From Macrostomum lignano (taxonomy: Eukaryota): a stretch of DNA of 64,000 nucleotides. Where the stretch lies: contig NIVC01001979.1 of NCBI GenBank assembly GCA_002269645.1, forward strand, positions 1 through 64,000, read 5' to 3'. Both the position numbers and the translations under genes were made by a program. Within the stretch, counting starts at the first letter, position 1, and each line of letters starts with the position of its first letter. Of this stretch, positions 20,801 to 61,199 are shown in pieces. The notes beneath the pieces are model-generated. The model was given only the letters and a program-made list of their open reading frames with translations, was not told where the DNA came from and made no database searches.

Positions 20801-21155
20801 GGGATCGGATCGGGATCGGGATCGGGGATCGGGATCGGGGATCGGGATCGGGGATCGGGATCGGGATCGGGGATCGGGATCGGGGATCGGGATCGGGGAT
20901 CGGGATCGGGGATCGGGATCGGGGATCGGGATCGGGGATCGGGATCGGGGATCGGGATCGGGGATCGGGATCGGGGATCGGGATCGGGGATCGGGATCGG
21001 GGATCGGGATCGGGGATCGGGATCGGGATCGGGATCGGGATCGGGATCGGGGATCGGGATCGGGGATCGGGATCGGGGATCGGGATCGGGGATCGGGATC
21101 GGGGATCGGGATCGGGGATCGGGATCGGGGATCGGGATCGGGGATCGGGATCGGG
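17819..21155. repeat. 3.3-kb satellite, 13-bp unit GGGATCGGGGATC (GGGATCTGGGATC at the 5' end)
   Basis: Continuous alternation of GGGATC/GGGGATC; source of the three spurious 1143-1179-aa ORFs. Confidence 0.99.
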
Positions 21156-25039: not shown

Positions 25040-25838
25040 GCAGACAAATAAGAGCAGGCAGATAGGCAGATAAGCCATGCAGGCGGATAATCAGATAGAT
25101 AAGCAGACAATCTAGGCAGTTGAGTCGGACAGATAAGTAAGGAAAGTAAGCAGATGAGTGGAATAAGATAAGCTTGGCAGATAGCTGGGCAGATAAGCCA
25201 GACAGATAAGTCAGGCAGATAAGCTAGGCGGATAAGCTAGGAAGATAAGCCAGGCAGATAAGCCAGGCAGATGAGGCAGGCAGATAAGCCAGGCAGATAA
25301 GTTAGGCAGCTAAGCCAGGCAGATAAGCCAGGCAGCTAAGCCAGGCAGATAAGCCAGGCAGATAAGCCAGGCAGATAGGCCAGACAGATAAGCCAGGCAG
25401 ATAAGCCAGGCAGATAAGCTTGGCAGATAAGCCAGGAGGATAAGCCAGGCAGATAAGCCAGGCAGCTAAGCCAGGCAGATAAGTTAGGCAGATAAGCCAG
25501 GCAGATAAGTTAGGCAGATAAGCTAGGTAGATAAGCTAGGAGGATAAGCCAGGCAGATAAGCCAGGCAGATAAGCTTGGCAGATAAGCCAGGAGGATAAG
25601 CCAGGCAGATAAGCCAGGCAGCTAAGCCAGGCAGATAAGCCAGGCAGCTAAGCCAGGCAGATAAGCCAGGCAGATAAGCCAGGCAGATAGGCCAGACAGA
25701 TAAGCCAGGCAGATAAGCCAGGCAGATAAGCTTGGCAGATAAGCCAGGAGGATAAGCCAGGCAGATAAGCCAGGCAGCTAAGCCAGGCAGATAAGTTAGG
25801 CAGATAAGCTAGGTAGATAAGCTAGGAGGATAAGCCAG
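25040..25838. repeat. Minisatellite, 13-bp unit GATAAGCCAGGCA
   Basis: About 60 copies; begins ~30 bp after the donor of the NGFR signal-peptide exon. Confidence 0.96.
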
Positions 25839-25869
25839 GTAGAGAAGCGATACATATCGGTATAGTTAC

Positions 25870-25935: not shown

Positions 25936-26349
25936 CAGCTGGTTGATTAGGGAAAGGTAAATATTGAAAGAAAAGTTTCTTCAAAGCCCAAAAGCAAACG
26001 CAGCAAAAGGCAAGACAGACAGGCAGTGCCGGAGCCAGTTTACTGCGCGTCTTCTTATACTAGCAAAATTTTCAACTTTTAGTCCGCGTATCAAACAGAT
26101 TCGCCGCCCGCGAGACGTTGGTCGCGCTGATCTATGCGACCAACGGGGGGTGGCGCCCGATTCTTCACAAGCCCAAAACTGCACGACGCCTGATAGGAGG
26201 CCCCGGGAATTGCCGATTGGGCCGCTATAATAAATCTTAGCCAACGGTTTGGCCAAGACCAATGAATGTCTGCTATACTTATTGGCAGTGCGGCTAAAGC
26301 ATAGTTTGCTCCGGTGTCTGTCCGTCAAAGTAGTGCTCTTTTTGAATAG

Positions 26350-27510
26350 TCTGTCATTGAGTCTGCCCATAGTGTCAATCATAGTGTCTGCCATAGTGTC
26401 TGTCACAGTGTCAGTCATTGAGTCTGTCACAGTGTCAGTCATTGAGTCTGTCATAGTGTCTGTCACAGTGTCAGTCATTGAGTCTGTCATAGTGTCTGTC
26501 ACAGTGTCAGTCATTGAGTCTGTCATAGTGTCTGTCACAGTGTCAGTCATTGAGTCTGCCATAGTGTCTGTCACAGTGTCAGTCATTGAGTCTGCCATAG
26601 TGTCTGTCACAGTGTCAGTCATTGAGTCTGACTTGACTTAGCTGCAGGGCTGTCCCGGAGGGGACACAGCGGGAAGGCGCGGGCGCCCATTCCGCTAGTC
26701 CTTGAACGATGTCATTGAGTCTGTCACAGTGTCTGTCACAGTGTCAGTCATTGAGTCTGTCATAGTGTCTGTCACAGTGTCAGTCATTAAGTCTGCCCAT
26801 AGTGTCAATCATAGTGTCTGCCATAGTGTCTGTCACAGTGTCAGTCATTGAGTCTGTCATAGTGTCTGTCACAGTGTCAGTCATTGAGTCTGCCATAGTG
26901 TCTGTCACAGTGTCAGTCATTGAGTCTGCCATAGTGTCTGTCACAGTGTCAGTCATTGAGTCTGCCATAGTGTCTGTCACAGTGTCAGTCATTGAGTCTG
27001 CCATAGTGTCTGTCACAGTGTCAGTCATTGAGTCTGCCATAGTGTCTGTCACAGTGTCAGTCATTGAGTCTGCCATAGTGTCTGTCACAGTGTCAGTCAT
27101 TGAGTCTGCCATAGTGTCTGTCACAGTGTCAGTCATTGAGTCTGCCATAGTGTCTGTCACAGTCAGTCATTGAGTCTGCCATAGTGTCTGTCACAGTGTC
27201 AGTCATTGAGTCTGCCATAGTGTCTGTCACAGTGTCAGTCATTGAGTCTGCCATAGTGTCAGTCACAGTGTCAGTCATTGAGCCTGCCATAGTGTCTGTC
27301 ACAGTGTCAGTCATTGAGCCTGCCATAGTGTCTGTCACAGTGTCAGTCATTGAGCCTGCCATAGTGTCTGTCACAGTGTCAGTCATTGAGTCTGCCATAG
27401 TGTCTGTCACAGTGTCAGTCATAGTGTCTGTCACAGTGTCAGTCATTGAGTCTGCCATAGTGTCTGTCACAGTCAGTCATTGAGTCTGCCATAGTGTCTG
27501 CCATAGTGTC
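26350..27510. repeat. Minisatellite, 36-bp unit TGTCACAGTGTCAGTCATTGAGTCTGCCATAGTGTC, interrupted by an 80-bp insertion
   Basis: Tandem copies on both sides of 26631-26710. Confidence 0.96.
26631..26710 (-). mobile_element. ~80-bp short interspersed element (copy B) with 13-bp TSD
   Basis: GC-rich insert flanked by the direct repeat GTCATTGAGTCTG (26618-26630 / 26711-26723). Its reverse complement is ~70% identical by hand alignment to 44697-44777 and shares the end CCCTGCAGCTAAGTCAAGT. Confidence 0.75.
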
Positions 27511-27914
27511 AGTCGGTCGTTGAAGCGCCCGATGCACAGTAATCTTCCATAGCTTCTGTACTGCCCTTGGGGTCGATGGGAATTTCGTCCTGTTTTATGC
27601 AAATAAAAGTGAAGTAAAATTTTCAAAATTTATTACAGCGCAACGAGAAGACCTGCGAGGCTGCTCTGAAATTCCGTCTCTAGAAATGTATCGATTTGCA
27701 TTCGCTACAGCTCGGGCCATTGCCCCACATAATTCCTCCTGATCCTCGTTGGATTTTTTGGTAAAATTGGTAAAAATTGAGAGTCAGGGGCTGCGTGTGG
27801 ACTTGCTTTAAGTGGTCCAAAGGAACGTTTATAGTGTGAAAAACTATACGAAGCTATACAGTGCTGAAACTTTCGTGTTTAAAGCTCCCGTGTTTTGGAG
27901 GTGACTAGCTTCGT

Positions 27915-28340
27915 GTTTAAAGAGTGACTGCATCAGTGTTAAAAGAGTGACTGCATCAGTGTTTAATGAGTGACTGCATCAGTGTTTAAAGAGTGACTGC
28001 ATCAGTGTTTAAAGAGTGACTGCATCAGTGTTTAAAGAGTGACTGCGTCAGTGTTTAAAGAGTGACTGCATCAGTGTTTAAAGAGTGATTGCATCAGTGT
28101 TTAATGAGTGACTGCATCAGTGTTTAAAGAGTGACTGCATCAGTGTTTAAAGAGTAATTGCGTCAGTGTTTAAAGAGTGACTGCATCAGTGTTTAAAGAG
28201 TAATTGCGTCAGTGTTTAAAGAGTGACTGCATCAGTGTTTAAGGAGTGACTGCATTAGTGTTTAAAGAGTGACTGCATCAGTGTTTAAAGAGTGACTGCA
28301 TCAGTGTTTAAAGAGTGACTGCATCAGTGTTTAAAGAGTG
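27915..28340. repeat. Minisatellite, 23-bp unit GTGACTGCATCAGTGTTTAAAGA
   Basis: About 18 tandem copies. Confidence 0.96.
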
Positions 28341-29464
28341 ACTAGTCCTTTGATCAGCTGGTTCCGTGTCAGCTCAAGGGAAAACGGTTTTCATGCTTCA
28401 AGACTGACCTACAAGGCAGATTTCTGGCAATCCAAATTACTCAGCCCTCAGAAACAAGAGGCCAATAAAAAGTTACAAAAGAGAGCAAAAGTAGGTCAGG
28501 GAAATCGCATTTTTACAAAAGCAATTTAAGCGGCAATTCTGCAAGCTTAATAAAAAGACATTACTGTTTTACGTCCTTAGTTCTTTCTGTGTTTTCTTCT
28601 TCTTTTATGCCCTACCATTAGGAGGCGTCTTCATTCTTTATTTCTGTTTCCCACTTAAAAAAAGCTCGCGTCGCTCTGCTTGCGGATTCTTCCTGGTAAC
28701 TTTTGTTACTTTTTGCAATTTCTGCGCGCATCTCTGCCGAAGGTGCGCCGGCTTGGGAGACGCGGAATTGAGACATTAAAAAGTAGCTGATAGTTGCCCC
28801 GGCCCCAGTTAGCGACCAGAAAATGCGCGCCTGCCGCCTCCGCGGTCCCTGTCGGCCTGGAAGCCGGGGACTTCTAAATCAATCCAGCATCTGGATTGGA
28901 AACTTGCAGTTTGATTCAACAGAGTTATTTAGTTTAGTTTAGTTATTTATTTAGTTATTATAAGCCTAGAGTGTGTGACTGCGTGCCTGTGTACAGTATG
29001 TGCTCAGGGGTCAGAGGAATGGGCAGAATTGCTGTCAAGCACAGATTGTAGGACGATGTTGCGCCAGGGTGCCCAGGGATGCGGTGGCCATAAAAAACTT
29101 CATTTCAAAGCTTTTAGAAGTTTCCCATTCCAGATATCTGAATTGTAGATCTCCATGCACGGGCCTATTATTGTTCATTGCGAAATTCGATGCAAGTGTA
29201 GCCATCTTCGTGCCGTCCTACCTTCGAGGCCCCGCCGCCACCGCTGCCGCCCATAATTCAGGCCATTGTCCCAGACGGGTGAAGAGGCCAAGACATGCTG
29301 GAAGAAGATAATAAAAACTGCGGCATTCTTACAGCCAGAGGCTGAGATTTTTTATTGCCCTGAGGGGAATGCCTTGCGTTGAACGCAAATCGCTTTTTTG
29401 AAGATGGAGAAAGCGATTGCGGCTGGGTTTTCAGCCCACCAGCTCTGGAGCAGCTCGGAGAAGA

Positions 29465-30015
29465 AAGAACCGGATTCTGGGGCGGTTTTGGGGTGATTCT
29501 GGGGCGGTTTCGGGGTGATTCTGGGGCGGTTTTGGGGTGATTCTGGGGCGGTTTCGGGGTGATTCTGGGGCGGTTTCGGGGTGATTCTGGGGCGGTTTTG
29601 GGGTGATTCTGGGGCGGTTTTGGGGTGATTCTGGGGCGGTTTTGGGATGATTCTGGGGTGGTCTTGGGGTGATTCTGGGGCGGTTTCGGGGTGATTCTGG
29701 GGCGGTTTCGGGGTGATTCTGGGGCGGTTTCGGGGTGATTCTGGGGCGGTTTCGGGGTGATTCTGGGGCGGTTTCGGGGTGATTCTGGGCGGTTTCGGGG
29801 TGATTCTGGAGCGGTTTTGGGGTGATTCTGGGGCGGTTTCGGGGTGAGTCTGGGGCGGTTTCGGGGTGAGTCTGGGGCGGTTTCGGGGTGATTCTGGGGC
29901 GGTTTCGGGGTGATTCTGGGGCGGTTTCGGGGTGATTATGGGGCGGTTTTGGGGTGATTCTGGGCGGTTTGGGGTGATTCTGGGGTGGTTTTGGGGTGAT
30001 TCTGGGGCGGTTTTG
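29465..30015. repeat. G-rich minisatellite, 22-bp unit GGGGTGATTCTGGGGCGGTTTC
   Basis: About 25 copies; each contains a GGGGCGG box. Confidence 0.96.
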
Positions 30016-31519
30016 AGTGATTTTCAAACTCTCATTCAATTTCAACTGACAGTTTACAGAACAGGAATTATTTCGGTGCTGCCTAAATTAATAAAATTAT
30101 AAGAAATCGATTGCTCTTAGTTAGAAATTGAATGCAAAAGATCTAATGCTGAGGGTTGCCCCCGCGGAGGGATTTGGCCATAGACTATAGCAAAAAGCCT
30201 GCACAGAGAAAGGTTGAATCTTGAGCTTAAAAGTTAAACCCCGCGCGCTGAGAAGGGTGTTAGCAAATCCACCATATAGTCTATACTAAAGATCGCAGCA
30301 ACAGAAGAACTAGTGCAACAGTTGAGCTTAGAACTTGGCAAGCGAGAACAACTGCATCGTCTTCAGTAGGGGTAAGCACAGCTACCAACTAATTGGAATT
30401 GTCGTGTCTTTTTACATCTGCTTCTCGTTGGGAATTACAAGTTTTGGGGATTATTTTCTCATAGAAAGGCTTTAAATCTAAGAAGTATTTTATCAGAAAC
30501 AGCCTCTCAGCTACCTGAAAGTTTAACTAAAATCATAAGCCGATTCAAATTTCAACTCGATCCCATCATGAAGCCCTAGTAACCATCTGCCTGCGAACTT
30601 CATAATCGCAAATGCGGGTGGTTTTAAAGACCAAGTTTTGATACATGAGATTCAGGAGTCACTGTTTCGATAAGCTCATCCAAATGGTTTATCTCAATGC
30701 CACGGACTTCAAGTCACCCTAATATGCAGTGCTAAGTTTAAATGACTCTGCTTTTTGTGGTGGTTGCTCTTTGGATGAGATAGATTGCTCGTAGGCTGAC
30801 TTTGATTTTAAAAAGAGAACCATATATTCGAATAGGGGACCTTTTTTATTTGCTGATCCTCTAGGCTAAAATGAAAAGAAAGAAGCCGATATTTTTTCTG
30901 TGGCAAAGTTGGAAATTGCTAGGAAGAAATGTTTGTTTGAAAGTTTTTTATTTTGTTTTTTATTTACTTAGTTTATGCAAGTTAGTCGGAAAAAATAACT
31001 TGGCGAGAACTTAAGGGGGGACTATCATTAAATTCCGGCAGCCAATAAAATTCGTGGGGGGGGAATATCCCAATTTTTAGGGTCTTGGCCATAGACTCGC
31101 TTTCAGATGAGCGACCCTTTCTATTCCTTATCCATGGTTAGAATAATAAAACCAATGCTAGCAAACTGGAGCTACGGCTCTTGGGGAGATGTGTTGGCTC
31201 AGGTTTGGCCATAGACTATCCTTCACCTTCTAGTCTACAAAGAAAGAAGCACCAGCCCAGCCTGTACAGTCTACAATTTGAAATCAGCTCTGGAACTTTT
31301 GCCATAGACTATTTTACTTGGTAAAACGCGAAAGCGAACCAAACTGAGACCCAATCAGAATTAACCCCTCCATTCGTCTATGGCTTAAACCGTCATTCTC
31401 GATAAGCAAACCCGCATAGAAAATGGAAGCCATATTTCTAAGATTTGCAGCCAAACTATTTTATTTGTTTAACTGCAATAATTCTCTGACAATTGTATCT
31501 ACATGTACAAAGCAGTTAC

Positions 31520-32905
31520 GGAAAAACCATCTAGACACGGAAGCAGCATATAGACACGAAAGCAGCATCTAGACATGGAAGCAGCATCTAGACATGGAAG
31601 CAGCATCTAGACACGGAAGCAGCATCTAGACATGGAAGCAGCATCTAGACATGGAAACAGCATCTAGACACGGAAGCAGCATATAGACACGGAAGCAGCA
31701 TCTAGACATGGAAGCAGCATCTAAACACGGAAGCAGCATCTAGACACGGAAGCAGCATCTAGACATGGAAGCAGCATCTAGACATGGAAGCAGCATCTAG
31801 ACATGGAAGCAGCATCTAGACACGGAAGCAGCATCTAGACACGGAAGCAGCATCTAGACATGGAAGCAGCATCTAAACACGGAAGCAGCATATAGACACG
31901 GAAGCAGCATATAGACACGGAAGCAGCATATAGACACGGAAGCAGCATATAGACACGGAAGCAGCATCTAGACATGGAAGCAGCATCTAAACACGGAAGC
32001 AGCATCTAGACACGGAAGCAGCATCTAGACATGGAAGCAGCATCTAGACATGGAAGCAGCATCTAGACACGGAAGCAGCATCTAGACACGGAAGCAGCAT
32101 CTAGACATGGAAGCAGCATCTAAACACGGAAGCAGCATCTAGACACGGAAGCAGCATCTAGACATGGAAGCAGCATCTAGACATGGAAGCAGCATCTAGA
32201 CATGGAAGCAGCATCTAGACACGGAAGCAGCATCTAGACACGGAAGCAGCATCTAGACATGGAAGCAGCATCTAAACACGGAAGCAGCATCTAAACACGG
32301 AAGCAGCATCTAGACACGGAAGCAGCATCTAGACATGGAAGCAGCATCTAAACACGGAAGCAGAACCTAGACACGGAAGCAGAACCTAGACACGGAAGCA
32401 GCATATAGACATGGAAGCAGCATCTAGACACGGAAGCAGCATATAGACACGGAAGCAGCACCTAGACATGGAAGCAGCATATAGACACGGAAGCAGTATA
32501 TTGACACGGAAGCAGCATATAGACACGGAAGCAGAACCTAGACATGGAAGCAGCATATAGACACGGAAGCAGTATATAGACACGGAAGCAGCATATAGAC
32601 ATGGAAGCAGCATATAGACACGGAAGCAGTATATAGACATGGAAGCAGCATATAGACACGGAAGCAGTATATAGACATGGAAGCAGCATATAGACACGGA
32701 AGCAGTATATAGACACGGAAGCAGCATATAGACACGAAAGCAGAACCTAGACACGGAAGCAGCATATAGACATGGAAGCAGCATATAGACACGAAAGCAG
32801 AACCTAGACATGGAAGCAGCATATAGACACGGAAGCAGCATATAGACACGGAAGCAGCATATAGACACGGAAGCAGCATATAGACACGGAAGCAGAATCT
32901 AGACA
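31520..32905. repeat. Minisatellite, 19-bp unit GAAGCAGCATCTAGACA(C/T)G
   Basis: About 72 copies; the unit drifts to GCATATAGAC/GAACCTAGAC toward the 3' end. Confidence 0.97.
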
Positions 32906-32986
32906 CAGCTGATCACCAAGGAACAACAGGTGAGCATGCAAAGCAAATTAAAGCAGTTATCGCAGATTCTGTCAGTGATTTTCGCG

Positions 32987-33133
32987 CTTCTATATGCAAT
33001 AACTGCTGTTTATGCGTATCTGCCCACACGCAGGTGAATGCCAGCCAGTCCCATGACACGCTTCTATATGCAATAACTGCTGTTTATGCGTATCTGCCCA
33101 CACGCAGGTGAATGCCAGCCAGTCCCATGACAC
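32987..33133. repeat. Tandem duplication of ~74 bp
   Basis: CTTCTATATGCAATAACTGCTGTTTATGCG...CCCATGACAC occurs twice head-to-tail. Confidence 0.93.
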
Positions 33134-33509
33134 AGCCAGCCGACAAAATCTCTACTAGAAGCAGCCCGTAACAACCCCGGTGAGATCGTTTCTAGCCTGC
33201 TACATTTACCAATAAACTTACCAATGCTTAATTATTGCCTGAATGTTTCCTCATCAATTGCTGTTGTTGGATCCAGATAACTGTCATCATTGGTGATAAA
33301 CCTTTTTCAATGTACTTTGCGTGAGCCCGAACACTAGGTTAACCTATCGGCTGCAGCTTTGACCATAGAGTACTAATTAAGATATGAATTGTTAGTTACG
33401 TATCTACTAAATTAGCTAACTTTTGCATTGTGAATACATGTGGTTTACAAAATTTTGTTAATAAATTTAAGTTTTGCAATGGGTGATTAAAATGAAGTTT
33501 TGCTTATTT

Positions 33510-34244
<735 letters not shown>

Positions 34245-34294
34245 TATCATCACACTTTCACTTTGTACTTTGCACACGTCTTTCAGCAACTGTC

Positions 34295-37102
34295 ATGTCG
34301 CAACAGATTAAAGGCCGTGGTCGGGCTCGAGGGCGCGCAGGCCCTCGCCCTGAGGAGGTTACGTCTGGCGCCAGCTCAGTCCAAGCCCCTGCCCCCATCG
34401 CAGCTGCTTGTCCGGCTCCGCCACCAGGCCTGAGTGTTCAAGCTGGTGTTGCTGCTCCATCTGGAGTTCACGCTGCTGAATGTAGCGGTGCTGCACAGCA
34501 GGCCGGAGATCCGGGCCAGCTGTCTGAGCGCATGGCCCGCCTGCGAGTTGGCGGCGAAGCCAGCGGCGAGCGAGGTGGCCTACAACGAAAGCTGCTGCGC
34601 TTCCAGATGGCGAATGTTCGGCCCGAGGGAGCTGCGGGCAAGAAGGGCAGCAGCGGAGCCCCGGTGCAGGTGATGACGAATTTCGTTCGAATCAACACCG
34701 AGGACAAATGGTGCGCCTACCAGCTGGCCGCCGACTTTCGCCCGATGCTGGGCGCGAAGCCGCTGCGCGAGAAGCTGCTGAACGATGCCCAGCAGGTGCC
34801 AAAGCCGTTTGTTTACGATGGCGGCTGCCTGTACACCAAGCAGCCCCTGGCGCCTGCCGAGGGAGTAAAGTTTGCTGCCAGCATCAAGTCGTGGAGCGGC
34901 GAAGTTGCAATTAGACAGGTTGGCGTCATCGAAAAGAACACGCCTCAGTGGTTGCACTTGATGAACGTAGTGCTTGGAAAAACCCAGAGCCACCTCAACA
35001 TGCAAATGGTCGGCAGAAACTTTTATTACCCCGACCAAGCGACGAAGCTTCCACAGCATCGCATGGAGGTAAGCGGTTTGCTCTGCTGTGGCAGTTAACT
35101 TTGTGAATTTGACAAAAAATTCCACTTTGATCGCCTTTACCAGGTGTGGCCCGGTTTCGAGATGGCCATCAAGCCGTCTGACGGACCTCTGATGCTGCAT
35201 GTTGACGTGTCGCACAAGATCATCCACATGAGCACGGTTCTGGATGTGATGTACGACATGTACAATCGCAATCCCGGCAATTTCCAGGCCGCAGCCACCG
35301 ACGCCTTAGTGGGGCAGATAGTGCTCACGCGGCACAACAACAAGACGTACCGTATTGACGCAATCGAATGGGATAAGCGAGTAACTGAGACCTTCCCCAG
35401 GTACAATAAGAGCACTCGCCAGAGCGAGGAGATTTCGCTGGCCCAGTACTTCGCCCAGACGTACAATGTCAATTTGTCGGACAGTGGGCAGCCGCTTCTG
35501 ATGTCGAAGCCGCGCAAGCGAGACCTGCCGCCGACTAAGGGAGGCCGCCGAGAGCAGGCTGAGAACGTTCTTCTGCCTCCAGAGGTTTGCTTTATGACCG
35601 GTCTGACTGATGAGATGCGGGCCGACCGAAACCTGATGAAGGACCTGGCCACCTTCACTCGGATTGACCCGTCAACTCGGTGCGGCAAGCTGGTAAAATT
35701 TGCAAGCACAATGGCCCAAAACCGGGAGTGCCAGCGGGTGCTGGGAGAGTTCGGCCTGGCGGTAGCGCCCAACGCTGTGGAGGCCACCGCACGCCAGCTG
35801 GCTCCGGAGACTGTCCAGATGAGTAAACCCATCAGGGTGGACTCTGAGCGCGCTGACTGGGACAATGCTCTCAAGGGCAACGGCATGTTTCAGCCGGTGA
35901 ACTGCAAGAACTGGATCTTTGTGTACTCCCAGCGAGACGAGCAGGCGGCCGCCGACTTCTGTCAGAAGCTGAGCCGGGCTTCGCAGTCACTCGGCATGTC
36001 GTTCGGCGAGCCCTACGTGCTGGCAGTGGCGCAGGACCGAGACCAGCTGTGGGTGAAGACGATTGAGGAAAACATCGACCAAGGCCTGGACCTGGTGTTC
36101 TGCCTGCTGCCCAGCAACAAGAAGCAGCGCTACGACTCCATCAAGCGTTTGTGCTATGTAAACAAGCCGGTGCCGAGCCAGTGCGTCCTGACCAAGACCA
36201 TCCGCAACCCGGCCAAGGTGATGTCGGTTGCCACGAAGGTGGCCCTGCAGATCTCCTGCAAGCTGGGCGGCGTTGCCTGGGCTGTGAGCATCCCGATGAA
36301 GCGCACAATGATCGTCGGGATGGACACTTATCACGACAAGCGGCAGAGCGTCTCGGTGCAGGGCATTGTGTTCTCGCTGAGCGAGACATTCACCCAGTAC
36401 TACTCGTACTCGCCCATCGTGAAGGGAGGCAAAGCCGAGCTGCACAACAGGCTGGAGGTCGGCTTCAACTTGGCCCTGCAGAAGTTCAGAGAGAAGAACG
36501 GCGACCTGCCTACCCGGATCATCCTGTACCGCGACGGTGTGGGCGACTCTATGCTGGAGGAGGTGAGCTTTTGCTCAAGTAGTTGTCTGAAATTGGCGCC
36601 AAGTGCATCATTATAATTTATGTTATCATGTTTGCAGGTGAAGAACTCGGAGCTGCTCCAGCTGAAGCAGTCGCTGTCGAAAATCTACGGCGAGCGCATG
36701 AGCAGCCTCGGCTTCAAGGCCATTGTGGTGAAGAAGCTGGTCAGCTCTCGCATGTTCCGCAGGCAGGGCAGCCAGCTGAGGAACCCGTCCCCCGGCACCG
36801 TGCTGGACGACGTGATCACGATGCCGAACTTCGTGGACTTCTTCCTGGTTTCGCAGTACGTGAACCAGGGCACGGTCACGCCGACTCACTACAACGTCAT
36901 CGAAGACATGAATGATGCCAACATCAAGCCGGACCAGGTGCAGCAGCTGACGTACAAGCTGACCCACCTGTACTTTAACTGGCCCGGCACTATACGTGTT
37001 GTAGCGCCCTGCCACTATGCCCACAGGCTGGCGTACCTGGTCGGCCAGAATCTGATGGAGGAGCCGAGCCCGCAGATTTGCGACCGGCTGTTCTTCCTCT
37101 GA
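34295..37102 (+). CDS. piwi: PIWI-clade Argonaute, 885 aa; exons 34295-35068, 35144-36562, 36638-37102
   Basis: N-terminal GRGRARGRA motif; PAZ (VLTRHNNKTYRIDAIEWD); MID (RYDSIKRLC..VPSQCV..KVALQISCKLGG); PIWI (VGMDTYH, YRDGVG, PTHYNV, LTYKLTHLYFNWPGTIRVVAPCHYAHRLAYLVG). Both GT-AG introns are phase 0 and keep the frame. Confidence 0.97.
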
Positions 37103-37494
37103 GCAAGTTGGCACCGGCAGTGATATTGGACTCTGAATTGATTGATTATTGGAATTTGAAGTCAGAAGGGATTGTTTTGTCACAGGCTGAAACTAGTTGG
37201 GATCAAATTGCCTAAGGATTAAATGCACAAGTATTAATTGCCCAAGGGGCTTAATTGCCAGCACTACAATAGCTCCTAAGCCAGTGATTTTACACTCGAG
37301 TTGTGGAAATTTATTCAGCTATCTGATGTGACCAAATTCGTACACTTCAGTTTAACCAAGCCGAAGTCTTCTGAACTTAAGTAAAAAATGCCGCAAAAAA
37401 ACCGCAGAAAAAGTTTTGGGGGAGAAATTTTTTGGTAGAGTAACTTTTCTGTCAGGATTTTCAGAGGGCACAAGCGAAGCTGCAGTGCGATTGA

Positions 37495-37590
37495 ATATTT
37501 GATTGGATACTTGATAGGATATTTGATTGAATATTTGATTTTATACTTGATTTGATACTTGATTGGACATTTGATGGTATATTTGATTGA
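37495..37590. repeat. Short degenerate 12-bp array GATTG(G/A)ATA(C/T)TT
   Basis: About 8 imperfect copies downstream of piwi. Confidence 0.8.
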
Positions 37591-38615
37591 ATTTGTAAAG
37601 AGTTTTGCGTTTCCCGGGTGTATCAAAGCGCACCATCCTGCCGCTTGAGTACGTTCTCAAATTACTTTTTGAACATTCGGAGTCTGTTATTCGATTGTGT
37701 GAAAATTTTTCTGTCGATGTTTCCGATTTAATAAACACAATTTTAGTAAACGTTAATTCATTTTGGTCATTGTTTTAGCAATCCAACATCTCTATGTTCT
37801 TTATGATCTCTTCTGATACAAATGCCATATTTTGATAATTGTAAAAATCTGCAATAATTTAAATGCTAATCGCTTCTGAAATAAGCTTATAAAGTGAGAT
37901 ATTTGTTTAACTGCTAGTGTTTAGTAATCGTTAATTCCTTTTGGTCATTGCTTTAGAGTTCCAATGCTTTCCTTACTATTATTCCTTCTGAAATAAGTAT
38001 ATAAAGTGAGATCCTTGTTTAATTGTTCGTTATTGACTATATGCAGCAGTTTCTTATTTTGTTTAAACTCATCAGTTTGCAATGTCTTCCATTGTGCTGA
38101 ATAAACAGAGCTCAACTAGCGTTGCTCAAAGTCGCAGCTTTTGATTTTTATCAACTTTTTTCTGGTGTTTCCAAATTTATGCCTAGCAAGTTTTCTCAAT
38201 CGGCTTATTGTTTATTAAACTGCTTTTAATGCAGCAGCAGCGAGCTGCCAATAAGCCAGAATCCCCCTTGCTAGCCACAATGACCAATTAACGAGATGAC
38301 GAATACTCCCTGGAAGTAGATTTCAAAACTTTTTGACCATGCTCTAAATGCTTGACTGACATCATTGTGAGGTCTGCAGTCAGAGTGCCCTGCAACTTTC
38401 AATTGGATTTAACCTTCAAGCAATCCCAAAACACTGCCATCATATGATATCCAGCACAGTTGAGCAAAATGAGGCAAAGACAACTCAGGCAACACGATGG
38501 TGCAAATGCGGTTCGCAGCTGCAGGTCTCGTGTATTTCTGCTAGTTAACCAGCCATACGCTGGTACTCAGCATTGCTGCAGTGGAAAATCCCCAGTCCAA
38601 GGTCAGTCCAGCAGT

Positions 38616-39284
38616 TTAGCTGTCGGGGGTCGGCAGGCCCTTGGTCTTCTCGCTGCACGGCTTTCTGCCCTCTCCGCGCTTCGGCTTGTAGAACTTGGCG
38701 CTGGCGCACAGCTCGGGCAGCTCGAAGTACTTGTCCTTGGGCTGGTGGAAGCCGAAGAAGAAGAGAATACCGCCGGAGCACTGGCCGTTCTTCTTGTACT
38801 TCTTCTTGATGAGGATCGGCACGCAGCGGTCATCGATGACGCCGCCCAGCTTGATGGAGAGGTCGCCCTTGGTCATGCGGCCGCAGTGCACGCTGATGGG
38901 CACCTTGCGGCTGGTGACGGTGGAGCGGGCCACCACGCGGTTGTTCGGCCACATCTTGGGGCACAGGGTGAGGAAGTACTTGGCGTGGCTCACGGGGATC
39001 TTCACGCACCGGGCGTTGGCGGCGCTGGTGCCCCAGGCGTAGTAGCCGACGCCGGCCTCGAAGTCGAACATGGTGTAGTGGTGTCCGGAGTAGTTCTGGG
39101 ACTTCACCTTGAAGTAGGCGGCCACCTTCTTCTTCTCCTTGGAGCCGGCGATGCCTCCCAGCAGCTTGAGGTAGGTGCCGTTGTGGTAGCCGAGACCGGC
39201 CACTCCGATGGCTCCCTCTCTGGGCGGGTTCTCGCAGGCCAGGGCGGTGGCCACCAGGGCGGTGAGCAGCAGCAGCAGCTTCAT
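38616..39284 (-). CDS. Secreted ependymin-related (EPDR-like) protein, 222 aa, intronless CDS
   Basis: ATG with signal peptide MKLLLLLTALVATALA and strong GC3 bias. It shows the EPDR-type pattern: N-terminal C-x-x-P-P, F..GV.Y.......C.K..V, C-V-P, C-terminal F..P..C. Family assignment is by motif recall, not by search. Confidence 0.75.
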   Translation of the reverse strand: MKLLLLLTALVATALACENPPREGAIGVAGLGYHNGTYLKLLGGIAGSKEKKKVAAYFKVKSQNYSGHHYTMFDFEAGVGYYAWGTSAANARCVKIPVSHAKYFLTLCPKMWPNNRVVARSTVTSRKVPISVHCGRMTKGDLSIKLGGVIDDRCVPILIKKKYKKNGQCSGGILFFFGFHQPKDKYFELPELCASAKFYKPKRGEGRKPCSEKTKGLPTPDS

Positions 39285-40326
39285 CTTGAGTCAGAGAGTC
39301 TGGATGTCCGGCAGTGAGAAATCAAGTGGACTTGATGGACTCTGGTCGCTGGCCAGGGGTGCTTTTTATGCACCTGGACTGCTTGATCACCTGGCAACTC
39401 GGCGTTCAAACATTTGGCAACAGAATTTGTTGGCAACCAGCAGGTGCGCAAATTGATGCTCATGGCTGCTGCCGGTGTTTGCTCGGGGATCGATGGTCAG
39501 CTGACTTGAGCACCGCTTTTCTGCTTGCCGATTCCATAGCGCTCTGGACACGGCGTCAGAAAGTTTCTGTTGGATTTTATATGACAATCCGAGCCTTTGT
39601 TTGCTTGACTTTGCATGCAGAGTTTCAGCTGGCTCACCCGCGAATACTGCAGGTAAAATTGCTGAGATTGCAGGAATTGGTTTTTTCAGGTGAATTGAGA
39701 ATTTTCTGAATTTGTTTGGCAACAGGGGCCGCCGACAGCGAAAGGACGGCGACGGGGCAAAGGTTTTGAAGTTTGATGTTGAAGATTCAATTAATTGAGA
39801 TTAATTTGTTTTCAACGTTCAAGCTTTTAAACCAGTGTGTGTTTGGTCCTAATCGCTGTCACTGGCCTGGACTTGAGATATTTATAGGAAAATTACTACT
39901 GGATGCAGCTTGAATTACCCACAGAGACAGGCGTGACAACTCAAGCCTCAATGCAATGATAGAGAAATTTATGAAAAACCACCGCTTCCCTCCTTGAAAG
40001 GCTAAAGTTCGCATAATATCCCCATTACCCTTTTTATTCCCACTGGGACCAAAAAGCTGACATCCCGTTTCACTTGCTACCAAGGGCTCAATGGAGAGAT
40101 GGTGCACGCGCAAGACGTGCTTCCATATTGACTAGCCAACAGTATGGCTAACCAACAGTCAACGACAAACAAGCATTATGATGCACGCTGACGAATCGAT
40201 AAGCATCCATGATTAGTCTATGGTAATTCGTCCAGTACAATTACGGTTAAAAAGAGTTGAAGGACTGCTGAAAGAGCTGAGCTGCAAAGCTGTCTCAGTG
40301 GAGGAATCTAGCACTTTGACTTGTGC

Positions 40327-40598
40327 GTCTATGGTAAAAACCCTTGTGCGCAGTCTTATTTGATCCAACATGTGTGGCTAAAGTAGACAAGAGTGGAGCG
40401 GGGGATGTGGAGTTAGACTTGAACCATAGAAAAAATATGCGCGAGCTAGTCTGAACATTCTTGCACGATGGAAAGAAGATTATGCTTGTAGTCTATGGCT
40501 GTTATGCTAAATATAGAAACATTGCGCATTACATTCTTGCACGATTGACATTCCCGCACGGAGTGCACATGTAAATTCAAGGTGCTTTTACCATAGAC
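40327..40598. mobile_element. MITE-like element with ~20-bp imperfect terminal inverted repeats
   Basis: GTCTATGGTAAAAAC-CCTTG at 40327 and its inverted copy CAAGGTGCTTTTACCATAGAC ending at 40598; internal triple CATTCTTGCACG; no clear TSD. Confidence 0.45.
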
Positions 40599-41534
40599 AC
40601 TTGCATTTCTGCACGCATATGGCGACTTCCAAAGCATTCTTGCACGCTGGATCAAATAAGAATGTGTCTTCATTCAACACATCATGCTTCATTTGTTTCA
40701 ATTCCCCGCCCCTGTATTCCCTGTATTACTGGCTGGACTGAAGCAGAAATTGCTAAGTCTGCTAAACGTTATACCGGGCACAACGTTCGACCTATCGTCA
40801 TTTTTTATTTGCATGAAGCTGGCTTTCGCTTGGAGAAGATATCAAAAAGCAAAACTGTCCAGCGGTAAGTTCTTATACTCGTATTTGTATTATATTCTTT
40901 ACTTGAAAGTAAATGTATTCTAAGTATGTATTCTAAATAATACATCCATGCATACTTTCTTTAGTTACCTAACTAGCAGCAAGCGAAAGGCAAATGAACT
41001 GGGCAAGATGTCTGACGTCTGATGTCTACTTCGCTATACGAAGCCAGTTCGTCGTCTGCGACTAACGAGACGTCGGTAGCCATCGTCGAACCATCTGATG
41101 ATAAGGATTCTGTGGGGGACCTCAATGTCTATCTCCGGTACCTCCGTGGGCTCAAAACGTAAGGCAGTCGGAACAGCGACTTCAATACAAAACGTCAAGC
41201 ATCGAATTATCGTGTTCAATCCAGTGACTACACGCGTTAACTTGTCTATGGCAGAAATTCTCATTGTATTGTTTCACTTCTTGGCTAGACCATATGACAA
41301 TGCATTTCAAGTTTAGCTAACTACAAGTCGTAATTTAGATTTTGAACTATTATTTGGAGCGTGTGTAAAACCTTGACAAACACATGCTTGCTTAGTTTTT
41401 ATTTCTAAAGTACAGAAGGTCCTATCTACTATCGCCGGAAGCGAAAACTGGCTTCCAGTGTCAAGCACCTCGATTTTGGTTGCTATGTAGCCGACGTGGC
41501 ACATTGAAGAGAGTATTTTGAATTCGAATGAATG

Positions 41535-41935
41535 AGTTCCTGCTCAGTGGGTGCAGTGCCAGCTCAGTGAGTGCAGTGCCAGCTCAGTGAGTGCAGTGCC
41601 TGCTCAGTGAGTGCAGTGCCAGCTCAGTGAGTGCAGTGCCAGCTCAGTGACTGCAGTGCCTGCTCAGTGAGTGCAGTGCCAGCTCAGTGAGTGCAGTGCC
41701 AGCTCAGTGGGTGCAGTGCCAGCTCAGTGAGTGCAGTGCCAGCTCAGTGAGTGCAGTGCCTGCTCAGTGAGTGCAGTGCCAGCTCAGTGAGTGCAGTACC
41801 TGTTCAGTGAGTGCAGTACCTGCTCAGTGAGGGCAGTACCAGCTCAGTGAGTGCAGTGCCAGCTCAGTGAGTGCAGTACCTGCTCAGTGAGTGCAGTGCC
41901 TGCTCAGTGAGGGCAGTACCTGCTCAGTGAGAGAG
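41535..41935. repeat. Minisatellite, 20-bp unit GCTCAGTGAGTGCAGTGCCA
   Basis: About 20 tandem copies. Confidence 0.96.
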
Positions 41936-42122
41936 TGCTGTTCCCGCTCACAAACCAAAAATGAACTAATAAAATTCAAGCTTAACAACGCACTGCTGGG
42001 TCCAATTTAAGCATAGTTTATGACAGAAAATGCCAAACGAAATGCCAGTTCAACAATCTAATAATATTTGTATTCAAGAGCAAAGAGCATAGACGCAAAT
42101 CAACCAGTAGTTAGCAGTTGCC

Positions 42123-43749
42123 TCAGCTGGCAACGTCCAGCACCACTCTGCCCATGCTGCGACCGTCGCCTCCGGCTGCCAGCTCGAAGGCGGTGCGAAA
42201 TTCGCCGCTCATAGAAAATCGCCGGTCAATCCTTGGCGCCAGCCGGCCCAGCGCCAACAGCCGCGCCAAATAGTCCAGATTGGCGCCGGACTGGGCAAAG
42301 AAGGCCCAGCGGATTCCGGCGGCCCGGTCCGAGGCGAAGGCGCGCGCCGCGACCGGGGCGCCGCCAGCGACGCCGCGCTGGTCGAACAGGCGTAGCAGCG
42401 GGCTGCTCACGGTGGCCAGACGGCCCCCCGGCCGCAGGGTCGGCAGCAGGCGGCGCCGACTGGCGGCATCCCTAGTCAGGTCGATGATGGCATCGAAAGT
42501 AGCCGGAGCTGCGGTCAGCTGTTGCAGGGTCGCGGCGGAGTCATGGCCGCCGGATGCCAGCACCGAGTCCAGCTGGCAGCCATTCACGGCAGCTGGCAGG
42601 TCGGCGACGTGTCTGAAAGTTCGGGTTTATTTTGATTTTAATACTATTGCTGAGCAGCTCAGCTGCACTACTGACAGTAGCACAACTGGGTTGGAGATTC
42701 TATTTACTTTGATTAATTGAACAGGATTAACTGGCTGTCGTTGAAGCATCAGGAGATTAGAGAGACTATACTAAGGAATCAGCGGATAAGGCAGTCCACT
42801 GAAGAATCAAAAGATTAAGGGAGCCACTAAAAGACCAGGGGATTAAGGGAGCCACTAAAAGACCAAGAGATTAAGGGAGCCACTAAAAGACCAAGAGATT
42901 AAGGGAGCCACTAAAAGACCAGAGGATTAAAGGAAGGCAGTAAAAGGCCAGGAGATTAAGGAGACACTAAAAGACCAAGGGATTAAGGGAGGCAGTAAAA
43001 GCTCACCTAGCCGGGCAGGTGACAACAAGGCGGCAGGCAGGCAGCAGGCATCGAATGAGCTGAAGCAGCAGCAAGCCAACGCCGCCGCTGGCGCCCAGGA
43101 CCAGCACAGCAGGGTCCGGCCGAGAACTCCGACACCTCAGCGGCCAGTTGAAGCTGCTGGCAGGCGTGGGCAGGCCAGCCTCCAGCATGGCGGCCAGCGC
43201 GGTGAGGCCCGGATACGGGACGCAGGCGGCAGCGGCCGGGTCCACGCCGTCCGGCACGGGCCGGACATGCCGGGCGCTGGCCAGGGCGAATTCGGCGTGG
43301 CAGCCAGACTCGAACGGCGCCCTGGCGCCCCAAACCAGCCGGCCGGGCTGGCGCAGCTCTGGCGGACAGTCCGGGCCGGCCGCGACCACCTCGCCGCAGA
43401 AGTCGCGGCCGAGAATTAGTGGCAGCGCTGGCGGAACAGCGTCAGGCTCGGCGCCGCAGGCGGCAGCTCGAGCAGCGAGGGGCAGCAGAACAGAGCCGTA
43501 GCCGGAAAGCAGTGCGATGTCTATCGGCTGCACAGTGCTGCAGTGCACCCGCACCAGAATATCGTCCGGCTGGCGGAGCACTGGCACCTTCATGGTGTCG
43601 GTGAGCTGCAGCTTCTCTAAGCCGCCATACTCGTATGAGTTCACTGAGCGCATTGAATGGGAAGCCATTGCTGATGGAGCTGGAGCAGTGCTCAGCTGCT
43701 GGACTGCAGCATGGCGCAAAAAGGCCACGCTGCGCACTGACTGGAACAG
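42123..43749 (-). CDS. RTN4IP1: RTN4IP1-like NADPH oxidoreductase (MDR family); exons ~43749/43668-43007 and 42612-42123; 5' end uncertain
   Basis: YGGLEKLQLT..ILVRVH..VQPIDI..SGYG..LPLILGRDFCGEV..VWGA..AACVPYPGLTA..VLVLGASGGVG is typical of RTN4IP1. The phase-2 intron 42613-43006 (GTGAG..tttcag) joins the two ORFs in frame. Confidence 0.85.
42745..43000. repeat. Minisatellite, 28-bp unit GATTAAGGGAGCCACTAAAAGACCAAGA, in RTN4IP1 intron
   Basis: About 9 imperfect copies starting right at the donor site. Confidence 0.9.
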
Positions 43750-44696
43750 CTGATTGAATGTGCAATAGGATGGGGTGACATTTAGTAAATCAAGTACTGC
43801 TTATTATGACTGTAAGTAGGTTGAAAAAAAGTTATTAAAAGATATTTTAGGATTACAACAAGGATCTCAATCCTGAAAACTTTGTTGCTATCCAACATCT
43901 ATAATTAATTCAAAATTAAACCAGATACCCGATTACTTCTTGATTATCCTAAAGTCAAGTCCTAGAATCTTGGGTACAATGCCTAAGAAGTTGATTGATC
44001 CTATCTAATATCTATATATAAATATTGTTTAAGCTCAATCATAAGTCTAATTTTAGTATAAAAACAAACCCATTGTGGGAAATTTCATTGTCTATTGCTA
44101 AAAGTCAAATAGACATAGATCCTTTTAGCAAAAATGTGTTTTATTTCAATTTTAGGCCTTTTAAAATAGACAGTGATAACCATCACTATTGGGCCCTAAT
44201 ATATATATCATACTAGCACTATTAGAGATACAATAAAAACTTTTAATTTTTTTCACTCAAAGTATAATAGGTCTAAAGGCATTGTTACACATAGAATTAT
44301 ATACTATACTATCAACTTATCAAGTTTTTTAGTACTTTACATGATCCTATTAGAATCTCTATATAAACTATGTTGATATACAACAATAATCTTTAGAATT
44401 AGGTCTAATATAAAATAGGGCTTCCAAGTATAATACAAAATAATTTTTGTGCAAAGTGAACTTCTATCTATTAAACCAAACTCAATTCAAATTTGGGTAG
44501 CTACACCTAGTTTACATTTGTTTTTTAATATTCAAATTCAAGCTTTTTAAATTCAAGAAACAAATTTGAAGAAATTTGAAGAAGTGCAAAATATTTTTTA
44601 TATTGAATACTATATCATATTTCTGCTATTTAACATTTTTAAAGAAGTTAAATACAAATTTTCATGTCATGCATATCATGACTAACTCATGACATG

Positions 44697-44780
44697 GTCG
44701 CCAGGGGTTAGCGATATGGGCGGCAACGCCTCCTCGCTGTTTCCGGACGCACGGAGCCCCCTGCAGCTAAGTCAAGTAAG
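44697..44780 (+). mobile_element. ~84-bp short interspersed element (copy A) with 14-bp TSD
   Basis: GC-rich insert in AT-rich DNA flanked by TAACTCATGACATG (44683-44696 / 44781-44794); ends CCCTGCAGCTAAGTCAAGTAAG; homologous to 26631-26710 on the minus strand. Confidence 0.78.
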
Positions 44781-45628
44781 TAACTCATGACATGATACAT
44801 TGATAGGCAGGCCTAGTAACCCAAATTGACAAGATAATATTATAGGAAATAATGAAATATGCTCGGAAAGGAAGTGCTCTACTCTACAGAAGTCGGCAGA
44901 ACCTGTAAGATGAGGCGCGTATCTCGGAAGGTTAGAAGTGAGAGTGAGTGGGTCTGGGTGAGACTGTATTTTGGCAAAAATTCGCTTGCCCCCTTGCAAT
45001 ATTTTCAGGGCCTCTGCTAAAGAGCGGCAGGCCCAGCGACTTCACTGGCCCAGCGACCTCACTGGACACGCCGGATGCATCTTTTTACTACAGTACCTGT
45101 ATAGGTCAGCTCAATAGTATATAAAACAAGACAAAAAGTAAAGAATCCGATAAAAAATAAAGTACACAAATAAAAAGCGTTTCAGTGTAATTTAAATTTT
45201 TGTGATGAAGCAGTTAGTAGAGTAAATCTAAAGTTAGTAGTACACGTATTTTATATGAATTAAAAGAAGACTAGGCTGGGCCTAAGTGAATATAAACATT
45301 AATAATTATAGAATTCCTAACTGGATTGCCATATTTTTCTTCATGTCAGAAAAAACAAAACACGCAACGCTCCCATTTAAAAAGTTCTTTTCAAAGAAAT
45401 CGTAATTTTTAGTAGCGGAGGCCTGCAGAGTCGCCAGAGCCGCGCATAGCGCAACTGCAGTAAGTTAAGTATATCATATATGACTAATCAGTTGATTTTG
45501 AACCAGGATTATTTGATTCTTTCTACTACTAACTAACAGGAAGGCTATATTTATAAAGGCCACATTCGTATAGGCTATAAATACCTCGTAGGTTCTATCT
45601 ATTCGACATTTGAAAAACATCAATCATC

Positions 45629-45652: not shown

Positions 45653-47225
45653 GTGAGTTGGCGGCTTTTAAAATTGTTTCTTTTTGTGTCTTAGTACAAT
45701 GAGCTCTATTAAAATTATAAATTGAATAAGCCTAGTGTTGTAGGGCTACTTTTCTAATTCCTATTATTGAATACCCTAAAGCTGCCACCAAAGTTGTCGA
45801 AGGGCTGATTCTTCTGTCTCTACAAATGATTCCACAGCTGTCACTAAAGTTGTCAAAGGGCTTAACTTCTGTCTTTATAAATGATTCCACAATGCCACCA
45901 AGTTGTACTAGGGGTTATACTTCTTTCTATGTTAAATGTCTTAATGTTGGTAGCTGCCACCAAGACTATTTTATTAATAAATTATGAGTTTATTAATCTT
46001 TGAATAAGTCTGAGAAATGTTTCTTGGAATTAGTCTGAGTATATATCTAAGTAGTTGTCTGAGTATCTATTTGAGAATTTTTCTGAGTATATTGTTCTTA
46101 GAATACTATTGAGTTGAATAAAGCAAGTTTGAAAAAAATTGGTTCAGGCATTCAGGCTGTAGACTGAAATACCAGTCAAACAAACCTTAGAGATTTAGTA
46201 TATTGTGATTTAGCCCTTATAATTGTATTGTTCTCCTGTTATTCCGGTAGTGTTTACTATTGTTCTGGTAGCATTTACTGTTATTCTGGCCTGAGCGGTA
46301 TTGGCTTACTGGTATATGTATTGCATGTACTTCCAATCCTGGGTATTACCGAGATCAGAGGGTCACAGCCTCTGGTTATTATTTTATATATCAATTTAGG
46401 ATCTACTTCGTAGTCTCTTACTACTTCCACTTCTCAGTAGTATATACTGTATGTGTTCTTTGCCATTTCACTTCTCTTCTGCAAATGAATAACTCGGAAA
46501 ACAATCTTATAACATTTACTCGGAACTCTTAGTATTTGATACTGGCTTTCTTTTTGAAGGAACCACAATGTGTGAGGTTGGTCTAGAGACTAGAGTCTAG
46601 AATCTAGAGAGCAATATCTAGGTCCATTTTTTGGTGTACATTTTTAACTATTCAATTTTTGTTTGGGCATGCACTCAGCATGATCTAGTCTATGGCCTAG
46701 ATATTGCTCTTATATCCTAGAGAATGACCCTTGGCACTTTTTTGATAGACCCCCAATGTTCATAGATCTATATATTTTAAAATTTATCCTAATAGATTCA
46801 AAGAATGAATTAGAAAATAAATCACTGATTCAATCTGTCAAAAAACTTACAACTTACCCTATTTTTAGATAAAGTTTATTGTTGGACATAGGCAAATACA
46901 AACTAGGATATTAAAAAGCAAATTGAGATACCAAAATGCATGACAACCCATTTTAAATCAATTATTTATGACTTAAATCATTAAAAGTTTCTTAGAAAAC
47001 CAAGCAAATGGGGAAAAGGTATAGCACTATCAATGCAGTATATTATTAGTATCATTTTGTAGATTATTTTAAAACAATAGTTAACATTTACTAACTTGCT
47101 AATGCTTTTATATAAATACCACTATAAATAGATTCTTAAAATTAATACTTAAAATTGATTGATTACTTATGATTTATTTTAAAAGCGTATGCAATCAAGA
47201 ATGGCTAACTAAACGGCACCCACAG

Positions 47226-52996: not shown

Positions 52997-53521
52997 CTAC
53001 CACCGGTACGGCACAGCCCTCGGCCTGTCTGCGCCCTCCTTGACCAGCGGCTTGTGAAACTGGCGGCCCTGGCTGTCGTGAATGGCGGCCCAGCAGTGCT
53101 CGCAGTAGTACTGCAGGCAGGCAACGTTGGCGCAGAAGAACGGCGCGTACTTGCCGGCGCACATCGCCCCGCCGCACTCGTCGCACATTTGATCGTCCAG
53201 CACGTAGGGCTTGACTTCCACCCGCTTGTCAATGTCGCTGCCGTGGCGCAGCTGTACAAACCTGGCGCCGATGGCCGCGATGTAGCTCTGCTGGCTGCTG
53301 AACGCCACCCTGCCAGCGCCTTTGGGATACTTCAGCTCCGGGTCAGTGTCGATGCCGGCGTAGCAGACCCCGCCGTACAGCCGGTTCATGATCAGCGCCA
53401 GCTCGCAGGCCCGCAGCGGCCGGGGCACCCCGCCAACGAAAATTGTCTTGCGCAGATCCAGCGGCTGGCTTGAGTCCAGGACGAAATCCGAGTCGGCCAG
53501 GTTCCAGGGACGGATTTGCAC
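52997..53521 (-). CDS. CPEB2: CPEB2/3/4 (Orb2)-class protein, last exon: RRM2 + ZZ domain
   Basis: VQIRPWNLADSDFVLD..KTIFVGGVPRPLRA..YGGVCYAGIDTDPELKYPKGAGRVAF..CDEC..C..FC..C..YYCEHCW..H...HKPLVKEG; acceptor cgcag at 53522. Confidence 0.97.
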   Translation of the reverse strand: MQIRPWNLADSDFVLDSSQPLDLRKTIFVGGVPRPLRACELALIMNRLYGGVCYAGIDTDPELKYPKGAGRVAFSSQQSYIAAIGARFVQLRHGSDIDKRVEVKPYVLDDQMCDECGGAMCAGKYAPFFCANVACLQYYCEHCWAAIHDSQGRQFHKPLVKEGADRPRAVPYRW

Positions 53522-53574
53522 CTGCGGCAGGTGGCGATGAGAATATCATTTAGGATTGGGGAAGAGGCAGACAA

Positions 53575-61170: not shown

Positions 61171-61199
61171 GAATGAAAGCATGCCAAGCATTCGCTCAC

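Follow-up and report, generated by a model that had tools for sequence, protein, structure and literature searches.

Two diverged copies of an 80-84-nucleotide element with target-site duplications in Macrostomum lignano DNA: candidates for a very short retroposon

Introduction

What kind of sequence is it that occurs twice, in diverged form, in a stretch of Macrostomum lignano DNA, each time some 80 nucleotides (nt) long and each time enclosed by a short direct repeat of its own? The stretch comprises positions 1 to 64,000 of the forward strand of contig NIVC01001979.1 (GenBank assembly GCA_002269645.1), and we refer to the whole of it as the window. A first, sequence-only reading of the window had described the two copies as a structured element with covarying stems, which it proposed to be a very small non-tRNA short interspersed element (SINE) or the 3'-end recognition structure of a long interspersed element (LINE). 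In the computational follow-up reported here, we ask whether the two copies are related, whether they have moved, and by what means. We think it likely, if only just, that both arose by insertion of a non-autonomous retroposon of the non-long-terminal-repeat (non-LTR) kind, very short at 80-84 nt and mobilised through a 3' stem-loop and a short-repeat tail in the manner of UnaL2 and UnaSINE. Other explanations are weighed below at the points where the evidence bears on them.

Results

Two homologous copies with a common start

Copy A occupies positions 44697-44780 on the plus strand (84 nt, 63% G+C, in flanking DNA of about 34% G+C), and copy B positions 26631-26710 on the minus strand (80 nt); they reach covariance-model scores of 105 and 96 bits, respectively. 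These coordinates and sequences, taken from the sequence-only reading, were borne out when we re-read the window. Judged by their alignment, A and B are homologous. They are identical at 59 of 85 columns of a global alignment (69%, in agreement with the roughly 70% estimated before by hand), and they share without change a 19-mer near the 3' end, CCCTGCAGCTAAGTCAAGT, located at 44759-44777 on the plus strand in A and at 26631-26649 on the minus strand in B. The 19-mer has two exact matches in the window, one per copy, where about 0.01 would be expected by chance. The 5' 62 nt of the two copies are also significantly similar by themselves, in that none of 5000 dinucleotide shuffles (0/5000) attains the observed score. 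Both copies begin in one and the same alignment column, with a purine, which makes exact the nearly identical start that had been pointed out earlier, and their homology stops at the flanking repeats.

The common start bears on one alternative in particular, in which an autonomous LINE, or a pair of related LINE subfamilies, gave rise to A and B by extreme 5' truncation and the 80 nt are no more than the recognition structure of the LINE 3' untranslated region. Severe 5' truncation is common in LINEs of the CR1, L2 and RTE types. Target-site duplications, a short-repeat tail and a structured, conserved 3' end would fit such LINE tails equally well, and so would the lack of a demonstrated promoter for RNA polymerase III (pol III). 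The difficulty is that two independent insertions, from sources that are 30% diverged, start at the same column, which is unlikely under random truncation (a weak argument at n = 2); moreover, no longer or shorter fragments and no reverse-transcriptase open reading frame (ORF) are seen in the window. With two copies of 84 and 80 nt and a shared start in 64 kb, the alignment appears to favour a discrete element over random LINE tails, as a preference and not as a result, and we consider the LINE-tail explanation unlikely, if well worth keeping in mind.

The window contains no third copy, complete or truncated, that could be detected by sensitive BLAST, by a two-copy covariance model run with its filters off, or by degenerate patterns. 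Nor do the covariance model and the degenerate core and tail patterns, which tolerated 3 mismatches, detect any tail-only or truncated fragment there. A self-BLAST with tandem repeats masked gives no dispersed repeats in the 60% of the window that lies outside tandem repeats; copy B itself sits inside a masked array, and the output of a repeat finder on the whole window is swamped by tandem arrays. A metagenome collection scanned with the 19-mer yields one match, with no similarity beyond the 19-mer, that we consider a chance occurrence. A scan of viral contigs gives no match to the element, and a full-text literature search gives nothing for the tail sequence. The degenerate core also produced 45 matches in G+C-rich bacterial and archaeal genomes, all of which we rejected, since each is confined to the 25-27 nt of the pattern.

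Target-site duplications and target sites

Each copy is flanked by an intact target-site duplication (TSD), of 14 bp in A and 13 bp in B, in keeping with the 13-14 bp previously reported. For copy A, the 5' TSD TAACTCATGACATG (44683-44696, plus strand) adjoins the first homologous base, and the same 14 bp, TAACTCATGACATG, recur with a 14/14 match as the 3' TSD (44781-44794, plus strand), which adjoins the last homologous base. For copy B, read on the minus strand, the 5' TSD CAGACTCAATGAC (26711-26723) is made up of bases 1-13 of a 36-bp minisatellite unit, and the 3' TSD (26618-26630) has the same 13 bases (13/13), with which the unit restarts and then runs on normally.

The minisatellite that hosts copy B (26349-27514) can be used as a collection of internal empty sites, in which each unit reads CAGACTCAATGAC-TGACACTGTGACAGACACTATGG. 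At copy B, a unit breaks off after base 13, the element follows, and a unit begins again from base 1. Excising B together with one 13-mer gives back a perfect 36-bp unit, and the other units of the array, about 25 of them, are uninterrupted. Because the periodicity of the host minisatellite is broken in exactly this way and the neighbouring units are intact, the repeat that flanks B is a true TSD. The sequence-only reading had allowed that empty sites might show the direct repeats not to be TSDs; for copy B the matter is settled by the intact units, which carry the 13-mer once. When all the tandem arrays of the window are scanned for non-periodic interruptions of at least 25 bp, 26631-26710, the stretch that makes up copy B, is the only one that coincides with a dispersed repeat. 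The sole other interruption of that size is a 26-bp variant stretch in an unrelated array.

These duplications leave little room for the view that A and B are an immobile sequence, whether a chance resemblance or a duplicated regulatory or RNA sequence, next to which the flanking repeats are incidental. It is true that the site of A lies in a locally repetitive stretch rich in TCATGAC and the site of B in a tandem array, and that short direct repeats are commoner in such places. But the duplication at B breaks the strict unit order of its array exactly as a TSD would, and the 14/14 repeat at A adjoins the boundaries of the homology on both sides, with the homology ending at the repeats. We regard an immobile origin as scarcely tenable.

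The two target sites are similar to each other. The reconstructed empty sites, TGAC-TA-ACTC-ATGAC and TGAC-AG-ACTCAATGAC, align to the joint form TGAC-NN-ACTC(A)ATGAC, and a match of this quality between two random 13-14-mers of the window has a frequency of 0.003-0.006. To judge from this one pair of sites, the endonuclease that serves the element may prefer targets of the form TGAC..ACTCA(A)TGAC. Any target specificity would be at most a preference, because only two sites are known and about 30 equivalent sites in the host array of B are empty.

A short-repeat tail at one end

Both copies end in a short imperfect repeat, which is AAGTCAAGT in B (AAGTC-AAGT) and AAGTCAAGTAAG in A (AAGTC-AAGT-AAG), the lengths differing by one AAG. 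Terminal inverted repeats are not visible in the sequence of either copy. Because the length of the TSD varies, terminal inverted repeats are absent, and a short-repeat tail of varying length stands at one end only, A and B look like retroposed insertions produced by target-primed reverse transcription and not like a DNA transposon. The evidence thus supports the target-primed retrotransposition that had been put forward from the letters alone. The 3' block combines the 3' strand of the closing helix (see below) with the single-stranded AAGT(C)-repeat tail, and it is presumed to be where a reverse transcriptase recognises the RNA and primes. Read by eye, the junctions with the downstream TSD (…AAG/TAAC… and …AAGT/CAGA…, the slash marking the junction) permit 2-3 nt of microhomology with a continued repeat.

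The tail, GCAGCTAAGTCAAGT, has a 12/15 match to six variant units, GCAGCTAAGCCAGGC, of a 13-bp minisatellite at window positions 25166-25848. This likeness is probably due to chance, because it amounts to one unit counted six times.

Differences that spare the tail and the stems

Of 82 aligned columns, 20 differ between A and B by a substitution and 3 by an indel, a divergence of about 28%, and the differences are not spread at random. The tail has none in 14 columns, the stems have 9 in 44, and the loops and junctions have 14 in 24. Fisher tests give p = 0.008 for the tail against the rest and p = 0.003 for stems against loops, the second contrast being partly circular, as the fold itself was deduced from A and B. 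The TSDs, on the other hand, are perfect. Simple arithmetic on the difference counts indicates that neutral decay after insertion at about 28% would leave all 27 TSD positions unchanged with a probability of about 1e-4, and the 14 positions of A alone with a probability of about 0.01. With every TSD position preserved and the differences concentrated outside the 3' tail and the stems, the pattern supports a divergence that predates insertion, having arisen in functional source copies and not by later decay. A and B are young insertions. On the same comparison of the two copies, it is reasonable to derive them from at least two source lineages that became some 30% diverged under constraint, with tail and stems kept, which makes the earlier suggestion of several active source lineages a reasonable one.

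A fold that both copies can form

The three-way junction drawn in the sequence-only reading can be formed by both copies. Its closing helix leads into a long hairpin with an internal loop and then into a second hairpin, and standard pairs fill 95% of the pair cells, compared to 40-58% when the partners are slid. The closing helix (44702-44763 on the plus strand, with strands 44702-44707 and 44758-44763) is perfect in A, where 6/6 pairs form, and imperfect in B, with 4/6, as described before. Hairpin 1 (44709-44739 on the plus strand in A, 26667-26697 on the minus strand in B) has a 6-bp outer stem, an internal loop of 3+2 nt, a 5-bp inner stem and a tetraloop, which is GCAA in A and CCCG in B. 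Within it, one pair shows a compensatory change from A-U to G-C; this change (A-T to G-C in the DNA) and the GCAA loop of A had both been recognised previously. Hairpin 2 (44741-44756 on the plus strand in A, 26651-26666 on the minus strand in B) had been reported to differ in sequence between the copies. The extensions do differ, but they are built on a TCC/GGA core common to both, and the hairpin contains one U-G to G-C double change.

The alifold energy of the alignment is -21.45 kcal/mol, versus -11.8 +/- 2.9 for column shuffles (z = -3.4, 5/1000), and the structured 70 columns taken alone give z = -4.5. The shared fold, as modelled from these two sequences, is plausible and not proven. 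An alternative pairing can be drawn in copy A, where the 5' end GUCGCC pairs perfectly with GGCGGC at element positions 23-28 (window 44697-44724) and competes with the inner stem of hairpin 1. In copy B, every equivalent of this pairing includes G-U pairs.

Possible origins of the 5' end

A defined 5' end could be set by transcription, by processing or by cleavage. For transcription, we find an A-box-like motif, TAGCGGAATGG, of the form TAGCG(G/A)(A/T)ATGG, at +13/+14. Its spacing from the purine start is the right distance for pol III; the match is weak, at 10/11 positions in B and 9/11 in A, and about 27 such matches per 128 kb would arise by chance. The same motif, together with the defined purine-initial 5' end, the compact fold and the avoidance of stems by the differences, could be expected if a structured cellular RNA of about 80 nt, the product of two diverged paralogues, had left retropseudogenes through copying by a LINE enzyme, in the way of "tailless retropseudogenes". 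We hold this to be improbable. No Rfam family is found on either strand at E <= 10, where a single antisense noise hit is the only match to overlap either copy; ARAGORN recognises no tRNA-like fold; and the most conserved part is an unstructured AAGT-repeat tail of varying repeat number, which is typical of a priming site and not of the 3' end of a cellular RNA. On the antisense strand, ARAGORN makes "mt-tRNA" calls (at default, 80% and 60% thresholds) that we rejected as spurious, for they cross the boundaries of the element.

As for cleavage, a self-cleaving ribozyme inside the element, similar to that of hepatitis delta virus (HDV) or of a new class, would account for the precisely defined 5' end that the copies share. 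The sequence-only reading had noticed a resemblance to the L3 and J4/2 elements of the HDV ribozyme, and GCCUCCUCGCUG in copy A agrees with the genomic HDV ribozyme at all of 12 nt in P3/L3. The resemblance does not survive closer inspection. The Rfam models of the HDV, CPEB3, hammerhead, twister and other ribozymes give nothing at E <= 10, copy B deviates from GCCUCCUCGCUG at 2 of 12 positions, and in both copies the stretch in question is the 3' strand of hairpin 1. The 5' end finds perfect 6-bp partners only on the 5' side of the L3-like stretch, while the HDV fold needs them downstream, and a hammerhead core (CUGANGA, GAAA) is absent from the sequence. We rejected the HDV-like fold on topology, as the nested double pseudoknot cannot be drawn with the P1-like pairings in the wrong order. 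Overall, a ribozyme origin of the 5' end seems very improbable to us.

Genomic context

The window is animal nuclear DNA. On the plus strand it contains a Piwi-family gene (34295-37102), which has two introns only, of about 50-70 nt each, and a YEATS-domain gene (47169-49798). On the minus strand it contains a zinc-type dehydrogenase-like gene (42123-43737) and a CPEB2-4/Orb2-like gene (52997-63932), whose C-terminal exon, coding for RRM and zinc-finger domains, has its nearest counterparts in Macrostomum lignano (89% identity) and Mytilus (86%), a hint of a bilaterian and perhaps spiralian host. A cysteine-rich TNFR-like ORF is also present. For the Piwi exon, we find a single 81%-identical relative, a Logan transcript (SRR30276804, SRR30276812); no named protein exceeds 42% identity, and by this measure the animal lacks a close annotated relative. 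About 244 copies of TAG form a microsatellite at 33512-34243, with some 50 bp between its end and the start of the first Piwi ORF downstream.

Tandem repeats take up about 40% of the window. They form approximately 45 unrelated minisatellite families, with periods mostly of 13-36 bp, in arrays of 0.3-3.3 kb that occur every 1-2 kb, including in the introns of the CPEB-like gene. The largest array (17821-21155) comprises 3.3 kb of the 13-mer GGATCGGGGATCG, in about 260 copies with 97% matches, 69% G+C and a strong GC skew. At 32985-33133, a 74-bp non-repetitive segment is duplicated in tandem with perfect (100%) identity, which suggests a very recent event.

Discussion

We return to the explanation that we prefer, a very short non-autonomous non-LTR retroposon, and describe how it would operate. 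The element would be transcribed as an RNA of about 80 nt that takes on the three-way fold (closing helix, internal-loop hairpin and second hairpin) and carries a single-stranded, imperfect AAGT(C)-repeat tail at its 3' end. Either pol III initiation or processing of the RNA would define its 5' end. A LINE of the "stringent type" would supply the reverse transcriptase, which would bind the structured 3' region, and the LINE enzyme would nick the target, apparently favouring TGAC..ACTCA(A)TGAC. Reverse transcription would then be primed on the tail repeats, where it could slip and draw on 2-3 nt of microhomology, and the RNA would be copied up to its defined 5' end, leaving behind a TSD of 13-14 bp. 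The RNA intermediate, the LINE partner, the roles given to fold and tail and the origin of the 5' end are what we infer; the homology, the genuine TSDs, the common 5' start and the non-random pattern of differences are there to be seen in the two copies.

Several results weigh against this explanation. No pol III head was recognised, in that Rfam at gathering thresholds reports nothing in the whole window, ARAGORN reports no tRNA on the sense strand of either copy, relaxed thresholds included, and neither copy has a B box. No reverse-transcriptase ORF of at least 150 aa is evident among the ORFs of the window, which were read by eye and not scanned against Pfam. The family is known from two copies only, in a 64-kb window. 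As to the fold, neither copy folds with a stability above that of its dinucleotide-shuffled versions (z = -1.2 and -0.9), copy B has lost 2/6 pairs of the closing helix, and the contrast between stems and loops has the circularity already mentioned. Covariation is not significant; there are 2 double changes in the two sequences, a count that is equalled by 125 of 500 shuffles, and the "covarying stems" of the sequence-only reading were an overstatement.

The closest comparison is with the stringent-type LINE tails. UnaL2 and UnaSINE have a common tail of about 60 nt, formed by a stem-loop with an internal loop and by (UGUAA)n repeats (PMC1636434). The UnaL2 tail is required for retrotransposition and by itself allows heterologous RNA to be mobilised in trans; reverse transcription begins on the 3'-terminal repeats and slips there (PMC1636434). 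A LINE ORF2 protein binds its cognate tail stem-loop (PMC4176376). The element described here is like the stringent-type tails of the L2 clade (UnaL2, UnaSINE1 and UnaSINE2 of the eel, ZfL2-1 and ZfL2-2 of the zebrafish) in being a unit of about 60-80 nt with an internal-loop stem-loop and short 3' repeats. Hairpin 1 has the order of stem, internal loop, stem and small loop found in the UnaL2 tail, and the AAGTC-AAGT(-AAG) tail varies in repeat number. In contrast to the UnaL2 tail, with which it has no sequence similarity, the element adds a second hairpin and a closing helix that make a three-way junction, and its tail repeat is imperfect. Unlike UnaL2 and UnaSINE, it has neither body nor head in front of the tail module, and the entire element is about as large as such a module.

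Other known groups are similar in part. With SINEs in general, the element has in common that it is short, non-coding and dispersed, with TSDs of variable length and with subfamilies that would come from diverged source genes. It differs from them in having no detected tRNA, 7SL or 5S head, in having an A-box-like motif with no B box, and in having no A-rich tail. The rodent ID elements, whose core measures about 75 nt, are the shortest of the well-known SINEs. R2, RTE and L1Tc/NARTc are retrotransposons with HDV-like ribozymes at their 5' end, some of them with internally deleted derivatives. A defined 5' end on a non-autonomous retroposon would place the element beside this group, as would the 12-nt identity of copy A to HDV P3/L3; unlike those elements, it cannot form the HDV-like double pseudoknot, and it matches no ribozyme family. 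The sequence-specific non-LTR elements of the R1 and Tx1 clades target microsatellites or multicopy genes. The two target sites of our element are alike (p ~0.005) and one of them lies within a tandem repeat, which recalls those clades, but with two sites only, and with about 30 equivalent array sites empty, the likeness extends at most to a preference.

Taken with these comparisons, the element belongs to a known kind. It is an unclassified mini-retroposon, probably a new but ordinary very short parasite, and it leaves current concepts of retrotransposition unchanged. A stronger proposal would be that A and B represent a minimal, "tail-only" family, with no tRNA, 7SL or 5S head and no body, just a LINE-recognised fold and a tail, maintained in several diverged, constrained lineages and integrating preferentially at TGAC..ACTCA(A)TGAC. 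We put this forward tentatively, and on present evidence we doubt it more than we believe it. If true, the element would be among the shortest autonomous-dependent mobile units known in animals, and the question would be raised of how its precise 5' end is produced.

The likeness of the two target sites hints at an endonuclease with a sequence preference. If the family is confirmed genome-wide, it would show how small a LINE-dependent parasite can get, the 3' module alone being enough. Confirmation would also supply a natural alignment of many diverged, selected copies, from which one could learn, in a poorly studied bilaterian lineage, which features of its RNA a stringent-type reverse transcriptase recognises.

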